DNA of 64,000 bases from Bugula neritina. Its lineage: Eukaryota > Animalia > Bryozoa. The stretch's first letter is position 1. The number at the start of each line of letters is the position of its first letter. The notes below the pieces were generated by a model. The model had not been told where the DNA came from, ran no database searches, and worked only from the letters and a program-made list of their open reading frames with translations. A program made the translations under genes and the position numbers. Below are positions 13,901 to 15,429 of this stretch, piece by piece. The stretch covers positions 24,365,504 to 24,429,503 of the forward strand of contig OZ037765.1 in the NCBI GenBank assembly GCA_964035545.1, given 5' to 3'.

Positions 13901-15429
13901 TCAGGCATATAGCTGGCAATGATGAAAACAGTCCTGACATGTGGATGGTGTGCAACTACTCCACAGATCACGATAAAGCACAGGTTTGTGGCATCTTCCT
14001 TGTAGATATGCCACCCACATACATGTTACTAATCATATGCGATTTGATCATCTTGGTATTTAACTTCACTAAGTTATCCATGCCCCCACAAATTATTGCA
14101 TTCAATTTTGAGTCACGTATTCCTACGAACAAGACTGTTAGTTTTTAGTTTGTTTTTGTTCAACAAAGCTTATTGATCACTATTTATTAATGTTTTATAG
14201 TCACGTTTCTCCACGGAAGCATTCTCATTTGTTTCCTTTTTCCAACTGCATGATCTACAATCTACATGGTACAAGTTTTCCTGAAAACCATCCATGTAAT
14301 ATTTCAGCCATCTAAATGCGTTAGAGTAAAAATGAATGTAGCAATGGTATGTGAGACGATGGTTACTCCACGCACTGATGGCAAGCCTAGCACTAGAGAA
14401 GACTTGACTTGCCGTGTTCAGTATGCTGCATATGGTATGTCTATGAGCGGCCAGGCTGGTCTTTGTTTGCTTGAAATGACTCATTGTCATGAATGTTGCC
14501 ATTTTTTCTAGTTGTCTCCTCATGCGATAAGAGCCAAGATGAACACTGCTTTAATATGTCTCACCGAGAATAACAATTCTCAAAGCAGAGAGCATATATG
14601 TACTAAAATAACATACAACGCATGTGGTGAGACCTTCCAGAAATTTGCATTTGCGCCTGCCTATGCTTGTGTGTCTCTGTGTGTTCACATTAATCTAATC
14701 TATCAGTTGAAGATTTGTTTTCACCAACACCATTTTTATGTTCTAAAGTGCATCATTATAAATGTTGCACTTGAAGAAATGTAACAAAAATCTACTTTGG
14801 CTAAATTTCTGCACAGCAATTTTGAAAATGTATGTTTATGAAAATTAACATACCTCTTAATTATGTTTTGCCAAAAGATCATTGACTGAAATTTTCTGAT
14901 CTAAAGGGGTTGGGTGAAAACTAATTTACTGGTGTAAGCAAGTCTTCCTTTTAACTAGAAGTGTTTTTCGAATATTTTTTGTCTAATATATAATTTATGC
15001 TTCCACAATTTCTTCTGCTTGTTAATCTTTCTGCATTTTACTATTTATCTTTGAATCAATTTATTACACACTGCTTGCTTTCCAGTACACACTGTTGCAG
15101 TCAGGTATAAACCCTGGGTTTTAAAATCAAAGCACGTAATTTGTAGTTGACTAAAATCATTTCTACAGGATTGTAAGTAGACTTTTCAAACGGAACTTCG
15201 TGGGATCCAAATTAAGAAATTTCGTAAAGCTGCACAATCAATGCGAGTTATTAAAGAAAACTGGCTCTAGTTTTTCCAACTATTTCTTGTAATTGTTTCA
15301 GTAAATCCAGGAGGTTGGGCTCCACCATCTGTCCTCAGAGCTGTATACAAGCGAGAGTACCCAAAGTTTTTGAAGCGATTCACTCAATATGTGACTAATG
15401 CCACTGCAGATAAACCCATCATGTTTTAA
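7926..15429 (+). CDS. CERT1: Ceramide transfer protein (PH domain, serine-repeat motif, FFAT motif, START domain)
   Basis: Exons 7926-8204, 8457-8573, 8743-8850, 8957-9104, 10771-10902, 11003-11157, 11282-11374, 12035-12235, 12474-12635, 13720-13983, [14308-14434 or 14512-14626], 15302-15429. Motifs: [60 protein letters not shown] (FFAT 12065-12085), [43 protein letters not shown]-terminal KPIMF*. Confidence 0.97.
13360..13567. repeat. (TA)n microsatellite in a CERT1 intron
   Basis: About 200 bp of TA with a few TG interruptions. Confidence 0.98.
14308..14434 (+). CDS. CERT1: CERT1 START-domain alternative exon 11A ([42 protein letters not shown])
   Basis: atttcAG acceptor, G/GTatgt donor, 127 nt, phase 0 in and phase 1 out; matches CERT ..RCVRAKINVAMICQT..SRDNILCKITYVAN. 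Confidence 0.92.
14512..14626 (+). CDS. CERT1: CERT1 START-domain alternative exon 11B ([38 protein letters not shown])
   Basis: attttttctAG acceptor, G/GTgaga donor, 115 nt, phase 0 in and phase 1 out, no stop codon; homologous to 11A at protein level. Confidence 0.85.

Follow-up and report, generated by a model that had tools for sequence, protein, structure and literature searches.

Can a single CERT gene build two versions of its ceramide-binding pocket by choosing between two neighbouring exons? The question was raised by a locus of the bryozoan Bugula neritina (the window, 64,000 nucleotides of contig OZ037765.1), in which an original prediction recognised two tandem-duplicated exons that would be used one at a time and would swap a part of the START domain. 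CERT governs how ceramide flows out of the endoplasmic reticulum and into the Golgi. The gene was present as a single copy in the B. neritina genome, with one match in a search of that genome. The exon model, starting at the ATG at position 7926, placed ten exons upstream of the alternatives and was free of internal stops with either 11A or 11B, the predicted proteins being 637 and 633 aa long, respectively. Exon 1 encoded a PH domain (Pfam PH, E 2e-8), an FFAT-type motif, EEEFFDA, was located at residue 353 in the middle region, and exon 10 matched the START domain (Pfam START, E 1.5e-10). When the START domain was searched against the PDB sequences, all the matches were CERT chains (E 2e-31). 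The equivalents of the ceramide-contact residues R442, E446, Q467, N504, and Y553 were present, and the equivalent of human Y482 was a Phe, as it is in Lingula. The PH domain, the FFAT motif, the START domain, and the contact residues identify the gene, at the level of its predicted protein, as CERT/STARD11, and a role in ceramide transfer is predicted from them.

The two alternatives, 11A and 11B (Table 1), each possess an AG acceptor and a GT donor (GTATGT in 11A, GTGAGA in 11B), are entered in phase 0 and left in phase 1, and are open; the positions, lengths, splice sites, and phases first proposed for them were all confirmed on the sequence. Their peptides are homologous, with 30% identity and a pairwise E of 2e-6. 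It had also been claimed that the inclusion of both exons, or of neither, shifts the frame, and premature stops were indeed computed in the two cases. Co-inclusion of 11A and 11B leads to a stop inside 11B, 189 nt 5′ of the last junction, which is that of an intron in the 3′UTR, and the skipping of both leads to an immediate stop 133 nt 5′ of the same intron. From the normal stop to that intron the distance is 8 nt. According to the usual rule, a stop more than 50–55 nt upstream of a junction commits the mRNA to decay. Given these distances, only the products with one exon 11 would escape, if the rule also applies in bryozoans. The 3′UTR intron would thus expose frameshifted splice products to decay and spare the normal ones.

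Table 1. Features of the CERT locus, in positions of the window.
Feature	Position	Strand	Description
CERT (STARD11/COL4A3BP) coding region	7926..15429	+	12 coding exons per transcript; PH, FFAT-like, START
Constitutive exon 10	13720..13983	+	Middle of START; equivalents of R442, E446, Q467, N504; spliced to 11A in RNA contigs
Exon 11A, dominant alternative	14308..14434	+	127 nt; last START beta-hairpin (human 516-556); both junctions supported by RNA contigs from three studies
Intron between 11A and 11B	14435..14511	+	77 nt; candidate branch point CTCAT, A at position 49
Exon 11B, putative minor alternative	14512..14626	+	115 nt; same hairpin; V525>T, C549>T, N556>C, shorter loop
Last coding exon	15302..15437	+	V-NPGGW to stop 15427-15429, plus 8 nt of UTR; Pfam START; joint 14434>15302
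3′UTR intron	15438..15689	+	Starts 8 nt past the normal stop; joint in X1, X3, X7

The conservation of the pair was assessed in the DNA contigs of a sister lineage (L005–L007, independent assemblies) and in five more distant lineages (L004, L008, L013, L014, and L018), located through relatives of exon 10. Exon 10 is about 4% and the introns 9% different from the reference in the public RNA and older DNA of this species (X1, X3, X7, and L005–L007), consistent with their origin in another cryptic lineage of B. neritina. Between the sister lineage and the window, 30 of 324 sites differed in intron 10 and 64 of 671 in the intron following 11B. Inside 11B a single nucleotide out of 115 differed, and the change was synonymous (in an Asn codon), as compared to 94 out of 995 in the flanking introns (Fisher p 0.0006). 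The 11A–11B intron showed three differences over 77 nt (p 0.06).

All five farther lineages have A followed by B. The size of 11A is 127 nt in all six lineages. That of 11B is 115 nt in the window and 124, 139, 118, 139, and 121 nt in L004, L008, L013, L014, and L018, respectively; in all six lineages the copy is open, of length 3n+1, and bounded by an AG acceptor and GTGAG donor. In the strand-coding cores, pS and pN were 0.75 and 0.07 for A, and 0.81 and 0.25 for B, so that in each exon pN was well below pS, the synonymous sites being saturated. The low pN at saturated pS indicates that 11B is a coding exon on which the constraint is real, yet looser. 11B evolves approximately 3.5 times faster than 11A, and the Bugula copy is the longest branch in the tree, which argues for a relaxed constraint. 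Judged from these substitutions, 11B is under purifying selection. Its loss or disruption in close relatives had been put forward as the observation most damaging to the original prediction, and 11B was intact in the sister lineage and in the five distant ones. It is very likely, in our view, that 11A and 11B form a real, old, functional, and conserved mutually exclusive pair.

The exon 10 of the five lineages shared 72–81% identity with that of the window. In Lingula, Lineus, Owenia, and a chiton (L015, L016, L017, and L020), an intron interrupts this exon, which is continuous (264 nt) in the six lineages, a distribution that suggests a shared intron loss. In a tree of exon 10, the six lineages did not come out as a clade. 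The five relatives are taken for bryozoans, which they probably are, from their exon-10 identity and from the intron loss and exon pair that they have in common with B. neritina.

The position of the exchanged segment in the domain was read on a modelled Lingula START domain (pLDDT 89; TM 0.9 to CERT START crystal structures), with residues numbered by alignment to human CERT, counting from the human C-terminus. The segment corresponds to the strands 153–164 and 179–190 of the model, which are the two final ones in the sheet, together with their loop. It contains A521, I523, and Y553 and adjoins V557, four residues that contact ceramide in simulations (PMC11228987); a docking study (PMC7729066) gave V525, also within the segment, as a contact of the cavity. 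The six B copies all keep Y553, the Tyr before VNPGG that had been noticed in both exons, as well as R520, N524, C529, T531, and R544. At position 525 the B copies have Thr (four copies) or Ala (two); of 87 other CERTs, 81 have a Val there. All six B copies have Thr in place of C549, a residue that did not vary among 38 other CERT sequences, and strand alternation would place residue 549 on the same face as 551 and 553. Position 556 is a Cys in five of the six B copies. The loop between the strands varies freely among them, both in length and in sequence. As a separate observation on the A copy, residue 556, encoded at the end of the Bugula 11A (14434), is a Tyr, and that of the five relatives and of human is an Asn.

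We propose that 11B rebuilds one wall of the ceramide pocket, in which the head-group contact Y553 would be kept, with Thr or Ala at 525 and Thr at 549. Since the difference between A and B in the pocket wall is conserved, the likeliest outcome would be a tuned lipid preference or release rate within the same fold. Taken on its own, an altered lipid preference, which is suggested by the pocket-facing substitutions, has about an even chance of being correct. A more specific version is rather doubtful: the 11B form would prefer another lipid (another class of long-chain base or acyl chain, or diacylglycerol), in a stage- or zooid-type-specific manner, with an independent duplication in brachiopods. 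If true, a lipid-transfer protein would have its specificity naturally switched by splicing, and residues 525 and 549 would be the ones to use for testing the cargo choice of START domains.

The 11B isoform might also be real and carry the same lipids, differing in stability, in membrane contact, in its partners through the variable loop, or only in the partitioning of expression. Y553 and all of the exon-10 contacts are indeed common to the two forms, the B loop varies in length and sequence, and swaps of tandem exons are mostly conservative (PMC9741552). Nevertheless, the changes that all six B copies have fixed lie at the strand positions 525 and 549, outside the loop, and a loop that varies so freely is unlikely to carry a conserved function. 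We consider such a same-lipid isoform plausible without expecting it. It competes with the lipid-preference step only and overlaps with the proposal of an ancestral exon pair with a minor B form.

The RNA data were assembled contigs of older runs from three studies (X1, X3, and X7), and such contigs drop rare variants. Another RNA set, X15, matched one short repeat only and was uninformative. Among the junctions by which the original prediction was to be judged, 13983>14308 and 14434>15302 were present in the contigs of the three studies, the second one, from 11A to exon 12, bridging 11B. The contigs of X1, X3, and X7 listed no joint into or out of 11B (13983>14512 or 14626>15302), and the 14434>14512 joint from 11A to 11B was likewise absent from them. 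11B was found only in unspliced contigs, about ten times shallower than the 11A path, and contig depth being a poor measure, this tells only of the dominance of 11A. The 11A–11B intron was retained in contigs of X1 and X3. Two clues, neither of them proof, hint at the use of 11B. In X7, the contig bearing 11B begins exactly at 14510, at the AG common to the end of exon 10 and to the 11B acceptor, as would fit the merge point of a pruned exon10>11B path. In X3, the contig over 11B was deeper (34) than the adjacent intron contigs (7–11). 11A is thus the dominant product and 11B a putative minor isoform, the splicing of which in Bugula we infer. A profile search with five 11B exons for short 11B-bearing proteins of ~50–158 aa returned nothing but an intron read-through ORF. 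The possibility that 11B is an alternative terminal exon, read into the intron, was rejected, because in L004 a stop occurs 5 codons past the donor and because the GTGAG donor is conserved.

The presence of 11B only in RNA contigs with retained flanking introns would also be expected of a poison or decoy exon, through which co-inclusion with 11A, or intron retention, would send the CERT mRNA to decay and tune its level, the B protein being irrelevant. The stop created inside B by the A+B product, 189 nt before the last junction, would serve this purpose, and in the sister lineage the A–B intron shows some conservation (3/77, p 0.06). A poison exon needs no CERT frame, yet the amino-acid changes in 11B are far fewer than the synonymous ones, every indel in it preserves the frame, and R520, N524, C529, T531, R544, and Y553 are retained; moreover, no A>B joint was present in the RNA contigs. 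We regard this function as improbable. That 11B is a neutrally decaying leftover of the duplication or an assembly artefact, as the lack of an 11B junction in the RNA contigs and the long Bugula B branch might suggest, is hardly credible and largely refuted by the conservation tests, 11B being also present in the independent assemblies L005–L007, nearly invariant where the introns differ by 9%, and intact with its splice sites in lineages with saturated synonymous sites.

How the choice between 11A and 11B is enforced may differ in part between species. The two copies are both 3n+1, and this frame incompatibility is the exclusivity device in every species examined, in which the wrong products would be removed by decay. 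The original prediction had emphasised the short A–B intron, said to be the shortest one assembled and able to prevent co-inclusion sterically. Within the CERT gene it is the shortest (the other introns measure 100–1666 nt), and the A of its CTCAT, predicted about 48 nt from the 5′ splice site, is at intron position 49. The threshold for a steric block is less than 50 nt between donor and branch point (PMC5740500). A block of this kind is plausible in Bugula (49 nt) and in L004, with an A–B intron of 55 nt; the A–B intron measures 154, 175, 289, and 360 nt in the four other lineages and 478 nt in Lingula. The introns of 154–360 nt in four lineages argue that the short intron is not the conserved device. 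In Bugula, exclusivity would result from frame and decay, helped by the 3′UTR intron and probably by the short distance from donor to branch point.

In the longer A–B introns, AGs are numerous and ordinary branch candidates occur close to the acceptor. The A–B intron of the window showed no stable fold (z 0.1), and the pairing of the A–B intron with the B donor was significant in L014 only (p 0.036, 7 tests). GCATG is a Rbfox-type motif and CTAAC a QKI/SF1 or branch-type one. In the A–B introns (L004, L008, L012, L013, L014, and L015), GCATG was found in 6/7 and CTAAC in 5/7, with a nominal, uncorrected p of 0.002 each; the neighbouring introns were not enriched, and both motifs were absent from the A–B intron of the window. 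A homologous hairpin was visible in the A–B intron of L008 (3808–3838 / 4032–4062) and L018 (7209–7233 / 7297–7321), where it directly follows a CTAAC and C-rich stretch. The fold of the L008 intron has a z of -3.4, and the hairpin is absent from the 77-nt intron of the window. These motifs and the hairpin are leads, and only leads, towards a regulated choice or a distant branch point.

A second case of duplication was found in Lingula anatina. RefSeq has four CERT isoforms for this species, X1 and X3 differing from X2 and X4 in this segment only, and the genome contains two tandem exons for it, 478 nt apart. A profile search of the Lineus, Owenia, and chiton Liolophura loci revealed one copy and no hidden second one. 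No swap of the segment was present in the annotated isoforms of ten mostly mollusc clusters and a mayfly (the survey covered mussels, oysters, clams, scallops, octopus, limpets, abalone, sea hare, and the mayfly). In trees of exon 11, built on 43 columns, the B copies clustered as one group, with support of 95/97 in one tree and 100/100 in another, and a recent duplication restricted to Bugula was rejected (p-AU 0.033). The Bugula A and B copies were both on long branches. In the mixture-model tree, bryozoan A and B grouped together to the exclusion of all other sequences (96/98), a result in favour of Lingula having undergone its own duplication; a topology pairing the Lingula copies with the bryozoan A and B was not rejected (p-AU 0.44). 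From these trees we lean towards independent duplications in Lingula and in bryozoans.

We propose that a tandem duplication of exon 11 took place in an ancestor shared by B. neritina and the five related lineages. Copy A would have stayed near the ancestral sequence and given the main product. Copy B would have diverged early, been held later under coding constraint, and given a minor isoform, probably limited to one stage or cell type. As a whole, this explanation (an ancestral tandem pair, spliced one or the other, with B as a minor form with an altered pocket) is highly probable.

The arrangement resembles the known mutually exclusive tandem exons (Hatje et al. 2017, PMC5740500; PMC9741552), which are likewise adjacent and homologous, of equal phase, and devoted to the same structural element, with non-3n lengths that put co-inclusion out of frame, one dominant copy, and a possible steric block when the donor and the branch point are less than 50 nt apart. 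Apart from the bridging junction reads for each exon that those studies require, of which the contigs of X1, X3, and X7 gave only those of 11A, the Bugula pair has the features of the class: adjacency, homology, equal phase, similar length, two open frames, coding constraint on both copies, and no frame-keeping joint inclusion. CERT1, COL4A3BP, and STARD are not mentioned in the main text of PMC9741552, nor is COL4A3BP in that of PMC5740500. Human CERT/CERT-L (GPBP-delta26/GPBP; PMC8875512) has the same family membership and domain order and also has a common and a rarer splice isoform; it differs by a 26-aa cassette situated just before START, upstream of the domain as the original prediction had stated, whereas in Bugula a duplicated exon swaps ~40 aa inside START, at the pocket. 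The Lingula isoforms (XP_013394771–XP_013394774) have the same exon duplicated in tandem, with the same phases, annotated as alternatives, and a GTGAG donor on the downstream copy. Both Lingula copies retain V525, C549, and N556, and therefore lack the bryozoan B signature, and their intron is of 478 nt. In OGDH, the mutually exclusive exons 4a/4b tune the response to a ligand and are kept apart by branch points near the upstream donor (PMC7969005); CTAAC near the A donor in several relatives of Bugula recalls this case, the distant-branch model being a lead only.

A literature search, covering few subscription papers, found no account of an exon swap internal to START in CERT, whether of Bugula or of Lingula, in agreement with the novelty first claimed. 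To our knowledge, the known CERT splice variants leave the lipid pocket untouched. The bryozoan CERT pair is a new, and old, case within the known class of mutually exclusive tandem exons, and its splicing mechanism is ordinary. A second pocket wall was made and kept in one gene, with fixed changes at sites that are near-invariant in other animals, and the A/B pair offers a ready two-variant comparison for the determinants of START lipid choice. With it, a lipid-transfer protein joins the families in which the same exon was duplicated in separate phyla.

Two minor features were seen around the gene. At 16318–16350, 3′ of the coding region, a weak profile match (score 11.5, E 0.024) that looks like the second exon-11 strand, incompletely conserved in L005, is probably due to chance. 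Upstream of CERT, at approximately 4150–5380 and 5930–6800, long low-complexity tracts with TAG/TAC/ACT periodicity are present.
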